Shown: positions 28,860 through 64,000 of the stretch, piece by piece
How the letters are laid out: each line of letters begins with the position of its first letter
How positions within the stretch are numbered: the first letter of the stretch is position 1
Assembly (NCBI GenBank): GCA_037379345.1
Contig: CM074511.1
Coordinates: 26,790,862 to 26,854,861, forward strand
Source: Perna viridis
Taxonomy: Eukaryota
DNA length: 64,000 bases
Direction of reading: 5' to 3'
The notes under the pieces: generated by a model
Seen by the model: the letters and a program-made list of their open reading frames with translations, nothing else
Told to the model about the DNA's origin: nothing
The model's database searches: none
Translations under genes and position numbers: made by a program

Positions 28860-29684
28860 ATTTACATTTGCAGTGTTAGTTCCAGAAGGCCTGGCCCCGT
28901 GCAGGTCCGAGTGTTAAAAGAATAGGCCTGCAGCAGCGCTAAGCTTGTCGTAAAAGGCGACTAAATAGTGCTCAGAAACCTAGCCAGGGGCTAGGCGCTC
29001 TGTCCACAGAGCAACTGGGATGTGTGCCCCAGGTGGTGGAATGGGGTACCCCAGCCGTGTTATATGCTGGGGTTGTCAGGCTATAATACGGAAAACCTGG
29101 CCGCAAACCATAGTGGGCAACCATGTTGGGAAAGATGCTACGTTCCTCGCACGTTAAAGAACCCTGCTGTGGTATTCGATAGGAGTAGGAACCTTTGCGC
29201 TCCGCCAGAGGAGGCTAAATTGCCCGACCCTACCCACCCCCCCCTTTCATCTTGTGGCAATCAAAATTTGTTGACCCTATCATCCTTGTGTCCCATCCCC
29301 TTTTTTCATCACATCACCATTTAATGTTCATTTTATCATCCATTTCATGTTCATCGTCTCAATATAGCTGAAATATTGCTGCTCGGACGTTAAACCCCAA
29401 CAATCAATCAGAAGGCCTGTGAACAGATCAAATAAATAACCAGTCGTCTAGACTTATTACAAATGAGGTATGACAGAGCAAAGAGAGATGACCTCAAGAG
29501 TTTCCGTTATTCCTTACGTCTCCAATTGGCTGCAACAGAAGGCACTAGAAACATGTACTACGAGTATGCAGTAAGACAAGCTACACAAGTTGCCCGCCTA
29601 AAGACACAAGTCAAGAAATCAAAGCAAAGCAAGACAGAACAGATAGAAACACGAGATGCAGAGCCTGTCGAATGTCAAAATTAA
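28860..29684 (+). pseudogene. Array gene copy 0, disrupted by a retroposon insertion and in-frame stops
   Basis: Removing the insertion restores ...TGT TAG TTC CAG AAG GCC TGT GAA CAG ATC AAA TAA ATA ACC... (C*FQKACEQIK*IT); the downstream part is nearly identical to array copies. Confidence 0.85.
28894..29408 (+). mobile_element. ~515-bp non-autonomous retroposon/SINE with (CAAT)n tail and 11-bp TSD
   Basis: TSD CAGAAGGCCTG at 28883-28893 and 29409-29419; GC-rich body; 3' end ATAGCTGAAATATTGCTG..GACGTTAAACCCCAACAATCAAT typical of mollusc SINE/LINE tails. Confidence 0.85.
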
Positions 29685-30636
29685 GATGGCTGATATTGTG
29701 TCAGAGAAACAGAACACAGATGCACAGCACATGCACAGCACATGTTGCTGAAAGGCTCTTGTCAGAGCCAAGCAAATATTTCAAAAAGATTTTTTATTGA
29801 TGTACACGTCATGCCTAACTCTGAAACCCACGCATTCCCTTCAATGATGCCTGTTTTAAAACGAGTCCTAAACTTTTATTTACATAATTCATGCCACCGG
29901 CCAGCTCCAACCTCAAAAAAAAAACGCAGAAAAAAATAACCACCTATAATACTTCATCAAAACAAAAATAAAAAGAAGGAAACGTAAGAGAACTTATATG
30001 AGAAAGGCGTATTTATACAGTGGTAACAGTGTAAAATTTTAAAATAAAAAAAAGAAAGAAAAAAGAAAAAAAAAAGAAAAAAAACATTTTTCAGTTTGTT
30101 TTGAATCAACGTCAAGGTTTTGACGTAACAAAGTAAATTGAACAAGACTAGTACAGAAAAACTTCACCGTAAAAAGACTCCGTTATCCGTCATATATGTC
30201 GAAGGTGACATCGAATAAACACTGGTGCATTAAATAAAGACAATATAATGTAGAGCGAAGCATTTGCTGAACAAATAACTGTTACGGAAAGTTTTGTTTT
30301 AACATCTCCAGCAAGCTCTTGAATTGCTTAACGAGTACCTTTAAAATGAGGCTAGTCGTGTCGGACAAGTACAAAGCAAGGTATAATTATGTAACTGTTC
30401 ATCTAATGGCTGTCATACCGTATGACCTAAACCACAATTAATCAACCGGTCAATCACTTAATATTTATATATGAATCGTATTTGTATATATCGGACATAG
30501 TCCAGTCAAGTGAAGTTTACCCATTTTTCCTGAAAAACTAAGACAAGAACTGCACTGTAAGGTGCATGATTAAAGTTGTGTTCGGACAAATAGGGGAAAG
30601 AATTTTTAACTTAATTCGTAATGCTAATTTAAGAGA

Positions 30637-30819
30637 CACGTGATTACCGGATACGCTTACACCAATGCCGCTTTGATTGATTACCAATCAAAACAGTAAT
30701 CAACAATTGACAGCCGACAATCAATATCGATATCGGTGCCTTGACTAACCTAGAAATGACAAGGAGTAAATTCCGTCATGTTTATAAAACTACAAAGAAT
30801 TTACAATTAGGCATCACTA
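30637..30819 (+). promoter_or_regulatory. Pol II promoter of the array gene (repeated in every unit)
   Basis: CACGTG 30637, CCAAT 30662 and 30684, TGATTGAT 30674, TGACAG 30708, TATCGATA 30725, TATAAAA 30783, Inr-like GCATCACT ~30 nt downstream, then ACCATG at 30841. Confidence 0.7.
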
Positions 30820-30840
30820 TTGTATCCTACATCTACGACC

Positions 30841-60693: not shown

Positions 60694-61029
60694 ATGTCTG
60701 AGAAAACAGTCAAAGATCCAAGACTCTCACTGTATATTGCTGAGTGTAAGTTCCGGAAGTCATGCGAACAGATCAAACTAATAACCAGTCGTCTACACTT
60801 ATTACAAATGAGGTATGACAGAGCCAAGAGAGATGACCTCAAGAGTTTCCGTTATTCCTTACGTCTCCAATTGGCTGCAACAGAAGGCACTAGAAACATG
60901 TACTACGAGTATGCAGTAAGACAAGCTACACAAGTTGCCCGCCTCAAGACACAAGTCAAGAAATCACAACAAACCAAGACAGAACAGATAGAAACACGAG
61001 ATGCAGAGCCTGTCGAATGTCAAAATTAA
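60694..61029 (+). CDS. 111-aa array protein, copy 21 (D35H)
   Basis: Intact ORF. Confidence 0.8.
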   Translation: MSEKTVKDPRLSLYIAECKFRKSCEQIKLITSRLHLLQMRYDRAKRDDLKSFRYSLRLQLAATEGTRNMYYEYAVRQATQVARLKTQVKKSQQTKTEQIETRDAEPVECQN

Positions 61030-62182
61030 GATGGCTGATATTGTGTCACAGAAACAGAATACAGATGCACAGCACATGTTGCTGAAAGGCTCTTGTCAGA
61101 GCCAAGCAAATATTTCAAAAAGATTTTTTATTGATGTACACGTCATGCCTAACTCTGAAACCCACGCATTCCATTCAATGATGCCTGTTTTAAAACGAGT
61201 CCTAAACTTTTATTTACATAATTCATGCCACCGGTCAGCTCCAACCTGAAAACAAAACGCAGAAAAACATAACCACCTATAATACTTCATCAAAACAAAA
61301 ATAAAAAGAAAGAAACGTAAGAGAACTTATATGAGAAAGGCGTATTTATACAGTGGTAACAGTGTAGAATTTTAAAAGAAAAAAAAAGAAAAAAGAAAAA
61401 CAATTAAAAAAAAAACCCCCCCAAAAAAAAAAAACTTTCAGTTTGTTTTGAATCAACGTCAAGGTTTTGACGTAACAAAGTAAATTGAACAAGACTAGTA
61501 CAGAAAAACTTCACTGTAAAAAGACTACGTTATCCGTCATATATGTCGAAGGTGACATCGAATAAATACTGGTGCATTAAATAAAGACAATATAATGTAG
61601 AGCGAAGCATATGCTGAACAAATAACTGTTACGGAAAGTTTTGTTTTAACATCTCCAGCAAGCTCTTGAATTGCTTAACGAGTACCTTTAAAATGAGGCT
61701 AGTCGTGTCGGACAAGTACAAAGCAAGGTATAATTATGTAACTGTTCATCTAATGGCTGTCATATGACCTAAACAACAATTAATCAACCGATCAATCACT
61801 TAATATTTATATATGAATCGTATTTGTATATATCGGACATAGTCCAGTCAAGTGAAGTTTACCCATTTTTCCTGAAAAACTAAGACAAGAACTGCGCTGT
61901 AAGGTACGTGCTTAAAGTTGTGTTCGGACAAATAGGGGAAAGAATTTTTAACTTAATTCGTAATGCTAATTTAAGAGACACGTGATTACCGGGTACGCTT
62001 ACACCAATGCCGCTTTGATTGATTACCAATCAAAACAGTAATCAACACTTGACAGCCGACAATCAATATCGATATCGGTGCCTTGACTAACCTAGAAATG
62101 ACAAGGAGTAAATTCCGTCATGTTTATAAAACTACAAAGAATTTACAAATAGGCATCACTATTGTATCCTACATCTACGACC

Positions 62183-62518
62183 ATGTCTGAGAAAACAGTC
62201 AAAGATCCAAGACTCTCACTGTATATTGCTGAGTGTAAGTTCCGGAAGTCATGCGAACAGATCAAACTAATAACCAGTCGTCTACACTTATTACAAATGA
62301 GGTATGACAGAGCCAAGAGAGATGACCTCAAGAGTTTCCGTTATTCCTTACGTCTCCAATTGGCTGCAACAGAAGGCACTAGAAACATGTACTACGAGTA
62401 TGCAGTAAGACAAGCTACACAAGTTGCCCGCCTCAAGACACAAGTCAAGAAATCACAACAAACCAAGACAGAACAGATAGAAACACGAGATGCAGAGCCT
62501 GTCGAATGTCAAAATTAA
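62183..62518 (+). CDS. 111-aa array protein, copy 22 (D35H)
   Basis: Intact ORF; last full copy. Confidence 0.8.
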   Translation: MSEKTVKDPRLSLYIAECKFRKSCEQIKLITSRLHLLQMRYDRAKRDDLKSFRYSLRLQLAATEGTRNMYYEYAVRQATQVARLKTQVKKSQQTKTEQIETRDAEPVECQN

Positions 62519-64000
62519 GATGGCTGATATTGTGTCACAGAAACAGAATACAGATGCACAGCACATGTTGCTGAAAGGCTCTTGTCAGAGCCAAGCAAAT
62601 ATTTCAAAAAGATTTTTTATTGATGTACACGTCATGCCTAACTCTGAAACCCACGCATTCCCTTCAATGATGCCTGTTTTAAAACGAGTCCTAAACTTTT
62701 ATTTACATAATTCATGCCACCGGCCAGCTCCAACCTGAAAAAAAAAAACCACAGAAAAATATAACCACCTCTGATACTTCATCAAAAGAAAAATAAAAAG
62801 AAGGAAACGTAAGAGAACTTATATGAGAAAGACGTATATATACAGTGGTAACAGTGTAGAATTTTAAAATAAAAAAAAGAAAAAAAGAAAAGAAAAGGAA
62901 AGAAAAAAAAAAAAGAAAAAAAAACAACTTTCAGTTGGTTTTGAATCAACGTCAAGGTTTTGACGTAACAAAGTAAATTGAACAAGACTAGTACAGAAAA
63001 ACTTCACTGTAAAAAGACTCCGTTATCCGTCATATATGTCGAAGGTGACATCGAATTAATACTGGTGCATTAAATAAAGACTATAATGTAAAGCGAGGCA
63101 TTTGCTGAACAAATAACTGTTACGGAAACATCTCCAGCAAGCTCTTGAATTGCTGAACGAGTACCTTTAACATGAGGCTAGTCGTGTCGTACAAGTACAA
63201 AGCAATGTATATGTAACTGGTTTGACGTAACAAAGTAAAATGAACAAGACTAGTACAGAAAAACTTCACTGAAACAGAGAAGAGAACACAGATGCATAGC
63301 ACATTTTTTTCTGAAAAACTCAGACAAAAAGTGTGCTGTAAGGTGCATGCTTGAAGTTGTGTTCAGAAAAAATGTGTAAAGAATTTTTAAGGTAAAGGAA
63401 AATGATTCACATCTTTGATGTTTATGTTAACAATCTGGATCAGTATATTTTTAAAAGGGGTTTCCAGCTGTTATTTGTTAATTTTTATCCAAATTTAGGA
63501 CTCAACTCTCAACACAACTGTCCAGGATCTGCAACTGGATAATATTATAGGGCAAATGTAAAGAAATGATCATCATTTTTTTTCATTTTAATTGATTATT
63601 TGGAAAGGTTTAACAAATTGTAGGTAAAAAAATACAGCCATTAACAAATACATATAAAAAACATTGAACAATCCACAAGTATAAATACATGTACAATGTA
63701 CACCAAAGAAGGTGCTTCATGACATGTACATGTACATTGTACACAAATTATCAATAGAACAAATAACAAGTTTTTTTGGTATAAATAAATTTCTTCTTGA
63801 AAGTACATTTATCATGGTAAGTGGGAAATGGTGTGTGTATTGTCTGTATTTCATGAATTTCATTCTAATCTTTAGAACAAGTCATTAATAAGAGAACAGT
63901 TTCAGTACAAAATATAATTCAGTAAAAGAAAGCAGACATCAAGGTATGTATCATATTTTTAACTATTCCTTAGAAATTAAATTGATGAATATGTAACACT

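Follow-up and report, generated by a model that had tools for sequence, protein, structure and literature searches.

Layout of the array and its 3' signals

The window, i.e. the 64,000 nucleotides of Perna viridis DNA that were analysed, contains a tandem array of 23 units of ~1.49 kb (29409–63389; positions are those of the window and all features described lie on the + strand). A scan of the whole window identified intact 111-codon ORFs in 22 of these units, and the extent of the array was defined by hairpin spacing and a genome-wide protein search. The first unit is 5'-truncated (29463–29769) and consists of an ORF remnant (29463–29684), to which residues 21–111 aligned at 95% identity with one stop in the genome-wide search, followed by a stem-loop (29754–29769). 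The last unit (62183–62592) comprises an ORF at 62183–62518 and a stem-loop at 62577–62592. The end of the array falls within the window, as the whole-genome protein search placed all copies here and none beyond the last (62183–62515). Neighbouring hairpins were separated by 1464–1506 nt, and the distance from stop codon to stem was exactly 58 nt in all 22 intact units. Mapping of ORFs and of the stem-loop 16-mer thus bore out the preliminary description of 22 intact, intronless 111-codon units with a stem 58 nt past the stop. The encoded protein was identical in 13 units and differed by 1–4 residues in the remaining nine (five variant sequences).

The first intact unit was taken as representative. 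Its intronless ORF (30841–31176) is preceded by two CCAAT motifs of putative function (30662–30666 and 30684–30688), by a promoter-proximal motif, ATGACAAGGAGTAAA (30756–30770), that an alignment of upstream regions found to be shared with two mytilid orthologue loci, and by a TATA box, TTTATAAAA (30781–30789), which lies ~55 nt 5' of the ATG and is kept in orthologues. Transcription is predicted to start near 30812–30818. Downstream of the ORF is a histone-type stem-loop (31232–31255) composed of AAA, the stem GGCTCT, the loop TGTC and the stem AGAGCC, followed by AAGCA. A histone downstream element (HDE) begins 12 nt past the stem, with CAAAAAGA at 31263–31270 and a conserved continuation to 31283. 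The sequence GGCTCTTGTCAGAGCC was found at 23 + strand sites between 29754 and 62592, of which 22 were exact and one (43147) had a single stem mismatch, as compared to no occurrences in 100 shuffles. A 50-nt block running from the 5' flank to beyond the purine-rich element was identical in 22 of the 23 units.

The stem-loop of the representative unit has a 6-bp stem opening with two G-C pairs, a 4-nt loop with U at positions 1 and 3 and an A-rich 5' flank, but carries AAGCA in place of the ACC(C)A 3' flank. Loop position 2 is usually a pyrimidine in the histone consensus and is a G in this copy. The hallmarks listed in the preliminary description (i.e. an AAA 5' flank, a 6-bp GG stem, a TGTC loop, a 3' A and a purine block at 12 nt) were all present. 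A search with the Rfam Histone3 model (RF00032) matched the proposed site but only at 26.7 bits (E 1.2e-5 for a 301-nt search), below the gathering score of 34. Histone genes of this genome have a stem-loop followed, after 12 nt (11 in H3), by CAAAAAGATTCTTA. The core CAAAAAGA and the 12-nt spacing of the array element are the same as in the H2A, H2B and H4 genes, and the block earlier put forward as an HDE equals that of the species' own histone genes (CAAAAAGATT...).

The encoded protein

Judged from sequence comparison, the array ORF is a real protein-coding gene under purifying selection (pN of 0.16 versus pS of 0.73–0.80 for the array protein against mytilid orthologues, with synonymous sites saturated). 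The protein has a basic core, a short acidic tail and a pI of about 10. AlphaFold2 produced a confident two-helix hairpin (helices 9–46 and 50–102; pLDDT 86). Foldseek comparison of this model with the PDB returned generic hairpins only, with no histone and no E-value <0.09, and a PDB profile search with the protein likewise yielded no histone and nothing below E 0.09. Pfam searches of the window protein, 18 family members and 10 long relatives gave only noise; one SWIM finger was detected in an Ostrea gene model and may be a fusion artefact. Matches in the ESM Atlas were to unnamed clusters, one of them molluscan. Two long antiparallel helices are also found in the ING4/ING5 N-terminal dimerisation domain, HR1/CIP4 domains, ESCRT-III cores and TBCA (TM 0.6–0.77), but identities to these were 10–19% with no profile match, a likeness of shape only that is no proof of kinship.

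Were the protein a highly diverged histone, H1 or protamine-like chromatin protein, the locus would be an unusual histone-gene array, a reading that draws on the histone-like organisation of the units (intronless, short, TATA/CCAAT-driven and tandem) and on the basic core with its pI of about 10. We consider this reading highly improbable. Neither a histone fold nor an H1 winged-helix globular domain was present by AlphaFold2 model, Foldseek, PDB profile or Pfam (0 of 18 members for the latter), and the composition is not Lys/Arg-rich as in a protamine. The claim that the protein shows no histone features therefore withstood both structure and profile searches. From the architecture, one may guess that the protein acts in the nucleus or on chromatin as a partner produced together with histones.

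Conservation and genomic distribution of the signal

The protein belongs to a family of >1,000 clusters that has no described relative and all named members of which are molluscan. A stem-loop and HDE were located 3' of the stop at no fewer than 12 family loci of this genome (11 besides the window array), with the 12-nt stem-HDE spacing kept at 11 of the 12. Signal-bearing paralogues on C4, C12, C7, C3, C1, C6 and C9 are 30–54% identical in protein and carry the signal 27–143 nt past the stop. The C4 array, with at least 44 copies, has a fully canonical stem-loop that scored 42.7 bits with Histone3, above the gathering score. The 3' flank of the stem was ACAC or ACC in most other paralogues, and AAACA and AAATA in mytilid orthologues. 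Both Mytilus galloprovincialis and another mytilid have kept the hairpin-HDE island whilst the remaining 3' UTR has diverged and is of different length.

Relatives from environmental sequences were examined with a metagenome scan that allowed at most one mismatch in the stem-loop. A stem-loop and purine-rich element occurred within 300 nt 3' of the stop in 43 of 68 distinct genes as compared to 0/68 upstream and none in shuffles; with a strict stem, the count was 20/56 downstream versus 0. The TGTC loop was seen again in two other clades. Compensatory changes were observed at three of the six stem pairs, although the 100% pairing of these stems is circular since they were picked for being paired. 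HDE variants differed among groups of environmental relatives, which is what matching to each species' own U7 would predict.

Several subfamilies have no hairpin, one of them conserved from bivalves to gastropods. As the loci examined in Biomphalaria, Mizuhopecten, Pinctada and Elysia all fell into this hairpin-less conserved subfamily, the signal was assessed beyond the mytilids by the metagenome scan rather than through named annotated proteins. Copies from Littorina and Mya had no hairpin. Few stem-loop-bearing members were found among the named annotated matches, perhaps because their mRNAs would be poly(A)-less. The prediction that homologues would retain the hairpin and HDE as the rest of the 3' UTR diverged agreed with the two mytilids, the 11 paralogous loci and many environmental relatives. 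The histone signal is tied to the family as a whole, some subfamilies without a hairpin notwithstanding, and reaches other non-histone repeats of this genome, a wider scope than in the preliminary description.

Approximately 1,224 stem-loop/HDE cassettes are present in the genome. About 320 belong to a type that follows a Mutator-like transposase, and 1.8-kb arrays with no clear ORF account for ~241. The Mutator-like transposase showed no similarity to the hairpin family, and kinship of the two was rejected. As the cassette is also found in hundreds of repeat copies that lack a convincing ORF, its presence alone is no proof of use. The cassette could have been left behind by, or hitch-hiked with, histone repeats or spreading repeats and transposons, and contribute nothing to expression of the 111-codon gene. 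The abundance of cassettes, including the transposase-type and ORF-poor ones, would fit this, and conservation inside the array says little against it because the units are near-identical. We nevertheless regard such an origin as very unlikely to account for the array signal. In paralogues and orthologues, with their saturated synonymous sites, the cassette lies on the sense strand just past the stop, where a relic would have decayed; it was absent upstream in the 68 environmental genes, and HDE variants differ from one group of these relatives to another.

Transcripts, 3'-end formation and comparison with histone genes

Public contigs from three runs start at 30815–30873, just past the TATA box, and leave the promoter uncovered; one of them starts at 30815, within the predicted start-site range. 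This pattern fits RNA, and the runs behind these Logan assemblies are presumed to be RNA libraries; strand and transcript ends are not visible in such contigs. Beyond the hairpin the contigs continue for 150–300 nt or further, reaching 31404 and 31533, with lower depth to about 31850. An A-rich tract lies ~270 nt beyond the hairpin (31523–31555); many short A-rich contigs pile up on it and the gene contigs run towards it. This tract could serve as a capture site for read-through RNA in poly(A)-selected or oligo-dT libraries.

As contigs run beyond the hairpin, some RNA reads through it, and such read-through transcripts could predominate. Most transcripts might then be polyadenylated or end at A-rich tracts, with the stem-loop acting mainly as an SLBP-binding regulatory element or being used only in, for example, oocytes and cleavage stages. 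The contigs of all three runs, the downstream A-rich tract and the AATAAA-like hexamers found there favour such dual or mainly polyadenylated expression, as does the SLBP-dependent polyadenylation reported for maternal histone mRNAs of Drosophila (PMC11997800). Contig evidence is biased towards read-through, since poly(A)-selected libraries would miss RNA that ends at the stem-loop but retain read-through RNA. Against mainly polyadenylated expression, conservation extends beyond the hairpin to the HDE and to its exact distance of 12 nt, and we know of no requirement for such stem-HDE spacing other than cleavage by the U7 snRNP. Mainly polyadenylated expression is, in our assessment, rather unlikely, though the most serious of the alternatives.

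It is likely that the histone pathway makes the 3' end of the non-histone mRNA of this array. The preliminary view of a non-histone family organised like histone genes and carrying histone signals is supported by the HDE match, the homologues and the protein structure; cleavage of its transcripts is the putative step. The TATA/CCAAT promoter of each unit would drive an intronless RNA of ~440 nt. SLBP would bind the stem-loop of this RNA, and the U7 snRNP would base-pair with CAAAAAGA, 12 nt past the stem. By analogy with the processing of histone pre-mRNAs, the transcript would be cut 4–5 nt past the stem, with cleavage predicted at ~31254–31256 (near 31255). This would yield an mRNA without poly(A), with abundance and translation that track SLBP, i.e. 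S phase and/or maternal stores.

The genome contains one SLBP gene. For U7 snRNA, an Rfam RF00066 search of the whole genome gave no matches, with few candidates scored, and hunts for patterns of an anti-HDE plus Sm site returned counts no higher than reversed-pattern controls. The best candidate, at L161:71–133, was rejected (18.9 bits, E 0.83, weak hairpin, z −1.9), as was a duplicated candidate on C3 that had no hairpin.

To our knowledge, replication-dependent histone mRNAs have been described as the sole known cellular mRNAs without poly(A). The mRNA ending without a poly(A) tail that has been regarded as histone-only probably also serves another gene family, shared across molluscs. In human cells, transcriptome-wide mapping of SLBP binding found no non-histone target with a stem-loop (PMC4604434). 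Searches of the searchable literature turned up neither molluscan non-histone genes with a stem-loop nor transposons that carry histone stem-loops. On balance we lean towards a molluscan SLBP/U7 regulon that extends beyond histones, comprising pan-molluscan small hairpin proteins (>1,000 clusters, often tandem) with poly(A)-less stem-loop mRNAs, together with the Mutator-like transposase and other repeat arrays of this genome; were this so, cellular mRNAs other than those of histones would for the first time be assigned to the histone 3'-end pathway.

With a conserved non-histone family that bears the full signal, the pathway would no longer be exclusive to histones, and the family would offer a natural test of the purpose of stem-loop ends, such as S-phase coupling or maternal storage. 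Natural variation in the stem-loop and HDE that is apparently tolerated, such as the UGUC loop and flanks other than ACC, would become available for study, and attention would be drawn to an uncharacterised protein that molluscs seem to require concurrently with histones. Poly(A)-based annotation of these genomes may overlook entire gene families, a caution for their gene catalogues. The transposase case, if real, would represent a new route by which a mobile element times its expression.

The array shares with metazoan replication-dependent histone 3' ends a 6-bp GG stem, a 4-nt loop with U1 and U3 and an A-rich 5' flank, and differs in the G at loop position 2, in AAGCA rather than ACC(C)A and in the score of 26.7 bits of the window copy. 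As in replication-dependent histone genes, the signal follows soon after the stop of a short, intronless, TATA-driven and tandemly repeated gene, whereas the product of the array is a non-histone. The histone arrays on C10 and C13 (H2A, H2B, H3 and H4) are similarly head-to-tail, with many near-identical units and with a separate promoter, stem-loop and HDE for every gene. Their units are 5–5.8 kb in length and carry four or five distinct genes, distributed over both strands, in contrast to the single gene, single strand and 1.49-kb unit of the 111-codon array.

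Histone-type 3′ signals in the window array

All of the features of the preliminary description (i.e. a tandem array of intronless ORFs, each followed by a histone-type stem-loop and a purine-rich block) were recovered, with their coordinates unchanged. The + strand of the window contains 23 occurrences of the 16-mer GGCTCTTGTCAGAGCC, of which 22 are exact and one has a single stem mismatch; 100 shuffles contained none. Successive stem-loops of the array are spaced by 1464–1506 nt. An intact 111-codon ORF was found in 22 units, with a stop-to-stem distance of exactly 58 nt in every case, whilst in the first unit the 5′ part is missing. 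A 50-nt block extending from the AAA flank through the stem-loop to beyond CAAAAAGA is identical in 22 of the 23 units. When the window protein was searched against the whole genome, no additional array copy was detected beyond window position 62515, indicating that the array is complete inside the window. Elsewhere in the window, a 388-residue open frame rich in Lys, Arg and Ser lies upstream of the array (3014–4180, + strand), and two stretches of short tandem repeats (15992–16186, 54-nt period; 16892–17014, 43-nt period) bear no relation to it.

The stem-loop of the window was examined with the Rfam Histone3 model. No match was reported at the gathering threshold; a sensitive local search aligned the model end to end (E 1.2e-5) with a score of 26.7 bits, as compared to a threshold of 34. 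The score was reduced by the G in the UGUC loop and by the flank 3′ of the stem (AAGCA).

The window (G000:C1:26790862-26854861) was compared with the core histone genes of the same 723 Mb bivalve genome, which lie in arrays on C10 and C13. These genes end in GGCCCTTTT(C/A)AGGGCC and a flank beginning ACC or ACAC, followed by CAAAAAGATTCTTA, which begins 12 nt past the stem (11 nt in H3). In the window units, the CAAAAAGA core is likewise found 12 nt past the stem, with a similar continuation. Agreement of both core and spacing therefore identifies the block, for which a histone downstream element (HDE) had been proposed, as the HDE of this species, in register and more than vaguely purine-rich. 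The genome contains a single SLBP gene (G000:C3:50938925-50939694). U7 snRNA, the expected partner of the HDE CAAAAAGAUUCUUA, was not found in the genome. One U7 candidate (G000:C5:38761730-38761792; L161:71-133), in which UCUUUUUG is immediately 5′ of AAUUUAUCCAG, was not accepted (i.e. a weak match of 18.9 bits, E 0.83, with a poor 3′ hairpin).

A family of small two-helix proteins

The window protein has no Pfam match. An AlphaFold2 model, based on an 18-sequence alignment, consists of two long antiparallel helices (residues 9–46 and 50–102) with a mean pLDDT of 86 and values of up to 95–98 in the core. Foldseek comparison of this model with the PDB returned only generic hairpins and coiled coils, with no E below 0.09 and no histone, and nothing above noise emerged when PDB sequences were searched with a profile or when all 18 members were scanned against Pfam. 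A divergent histone was rejected on the basis of the predicted two-helix hairpin and these histone-free search results, in agreement with the earlier view of a non-histone protein. The gene is protein-coding and under purifying selection, with a pN of 0.16 and a pS of 0.73–0.80 (i.e. saturation) as compared to M. galloprovincialis and other mytilid orthologues. Across the family, a basic core (pI ~9.5–10.6 in most members) is usually followed by an acidic tail, often Ser/Asp/Glu-rich, with a pI of ~4.1. A nuclear or chromatin-related role is a guess from this charge pattern and presumed co-regulation with histones.

Searching the genome with the window protein produced 80 matches, comprising the 23 window copies and 57 matches outside the array. 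A second array (G000:C4:925735-981581; loci L021-L030) consists of a 128-codon paralogue in ≥44 copies with a period of ~1.27 kb; a third lies at C12:28359207-28370454, and singletons are present on C1, C3, C6, C7 and C9. These paralogues share 30–54% identity with the window protein. One locus used in the analysis (L034) contains a run of N, which was kept as is. At 11 other family loci, a stem-loop followed by CAAAAAGATTCTTA was located 27–143 nt past the locus's own stop codon, with a stem-to-HDE spacing of 12 nt in 10 of the 11. The C4 copies have a fully canonical stem-loop scoring 42.7 bits on Histone3, as compared to 42.9 bits for true histone genes, and they account for most of the top-scoring matches; most of the best Rfam Histone3 matches in this genome are therefore not histone genes.

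Conservation of the stem-loop amid divergence of the UTR, proposed as a check, was evident in mytilid orthologues. M. galloprovincialis and an array of another mytilid carry a canonical stem-loop with a UUUC loop, and alignment of the 3′ regions with the window exhibited a conserved island from stem-loop to HDE in an otherwise diverged UTR, with stop-to-stem lengths of 58, 74 and 170 nt in the three aligned loci. Among 1.8 billion representative proteins, profile searching detected 1,156 family clusters at E ≤0.001, and the named matches were from molluscs in every case (i.e. bivalves, gastropods and Octopus). Among relatives at 80 marine metagenome loci, 68 distinct genes were scored for a stem-loop with ≤1 mismatch. 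This signal plus a purine-rich element occurred ≤300 nt after the stop in 43 of the 68 genes, as compared to none of the 68 upstream and none in shuffles; with a perfect-stem criterion, the figures were 20/56 and 0. The HDE varies among groups of these relatives (e.g. CCAGAAAGAAAT, CAAAAAGTT and CCAAAAAGAAAT), as would be expected if each HDE fits the U7 of its own species. The window's UGUC loop is seen again in two clades unrelated to each other. Compensatory changes were observed at three of the six stem pairs of the family, in a set of stems chosen for pairing such that their diversity, and not the 100% pairing, is informative.

Members lacking the stem-loop and cassettes elsewhere in the genome

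Presence of the stem-loop is clustered on the family tree yet extends over most of it, with 14 changes as compared to 29 in shuffles. One well-supported clade spanning bivalves to gastropods lacks the stem-loop and has poly(A) hexamers in its place; it includes a P. viridis locus (L042; G000:C7:2186600-2190100) and genes of Mizuhopecten, Pinctada, Biomphalaria and Elysia. L042 and its orthologues (L055, L057, L059 and L061) are slowly evolving, conserved from bivalves to gastropods and lack the stem-loop. This type is probably an ordinary polyadenylated member of the family and offers a good handle on its function. Most of the named, annotated family proteins that were looked up belong to this clade, which fits, though only weakly, with the earlier idea that poly(A)-based annotation misses members with the stem-loop. 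Two irregular gene models were also encountered. At a Mya arenaria locus (L060; CP111012.1), where no histone-type stem-loop was found, 3–4 family copies ~4 kb apart are fused into one 276-residue model. An Ostrea edulis protein (P0081; XP_048777949.2) joins a SWIM zinc finger (residues 100–117) to a C-terminal family domain (residues 303–398), which may reflect a fusion or an artefact of annotation; the protein exhibited no similarity to the Mutator-like transposase described below.

The cassette of a stem-loop, 9–13 nt and CAAAAAGA occurred 1,224 times genome-wide, as compared to once for a reversed control, making the phenomenon larger than the window. Approximately 320 cassettes are of one exact type, located 26 nt past the stop codon of an ORF for a Mutator-like transposase of 680 residues (PF20700, E 4.6e-59). 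In one example (G000:C1:20546000-20552000; ORF L175:1546-3588), a canonical histone stem-loop (L175:3615) is accompanied by CAAAAAGA; such a case would amount to a transposon gene bearing a 3′ signal of histone type. The type is dispersed on many chromosomes and also found in 3.3–5.1 kb arrays (e.g. C2:60.53 Mb and C8:44.29-44.43 Mb). A further ~241 cassettes occur in arrays of ~1.76–1.8 kb units (G000:C2:61718277-61835150, L172; C5:40.53 Mb; C5:50.04 Mb) containing GGCCCTTTT(G/A)AGGGCC, 12 nt and then CAAAAAGATTCTTA. These units contain no ORF of ≥65 residues; noncoding RNAs, spliced genes and decayed histone repeats are all possible identities. A passenger cassette was retained as a rival explanation because these repeats show the cassette to be capable of passive amplification. 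Within the hairpin family, conservation of the cassette across saturated divergence counts against this rival.

RNA evidence, proposed processing and known systems

Evidence for transcription was drawn from Logan contigs mapped on one unit, for which the RNA status of the runs was guessed and which cannot show ends. Coverage in three runs, which come from different studies, starts at 30815–30873, just 3′ of the TATA box (30781–30789), and leaves the promoter uncovered, a pattern more like that of RNA than of DNA. A fourth run, with coverage of the promoter and the unit junction, has the appearance of DNA. Contigs of the gene pass through the stem-loop to 31404 or 31533, with lower depth to ~31850, indicating that read-through RNA exists. 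This is counted as the main evidence against exclusively histone-type processing. Poly(A)-selected libraries would miss RNA ending at the stem-loop, and the contig extents are compatible both with cleavage there and with its absence.

With histone-type processing of the window gene, a TATA/CCAAT promoter, which bears an additional motif common to the Mytilus orthologues, would produce an intronless RNA of ~440 nt. SLBP would bind the stem-loop and U7 snRNP, by base pairing, the element CAAAAAGAUU 12 nt past it; a U7-associated endonuclease would cut 4–5 nt past the stem, near 31255, with a high dose arising from 22 near-identical copies. U7 snRNP acts like a ruler, and a fixed stem–HDE spacing is its requirement. 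The signals and their conservation are observed; for the window gene we infer SLBP and U7 binding, cleavage and timing.

Histone mRNAs have been described as the sole known non-polyadenylated cellular mRNAs, and SLBP CLIP/RIP in HeLa cells yielded no stem-loop-containing target outside the histones (PMC4604434). No report of mollusc non-histone stem-loop genes, or of transposons with stem-loops, was found in the searchable literature. In our view, the known histone 3′-end system is here joined to a large non-histone gene family that is itself new.
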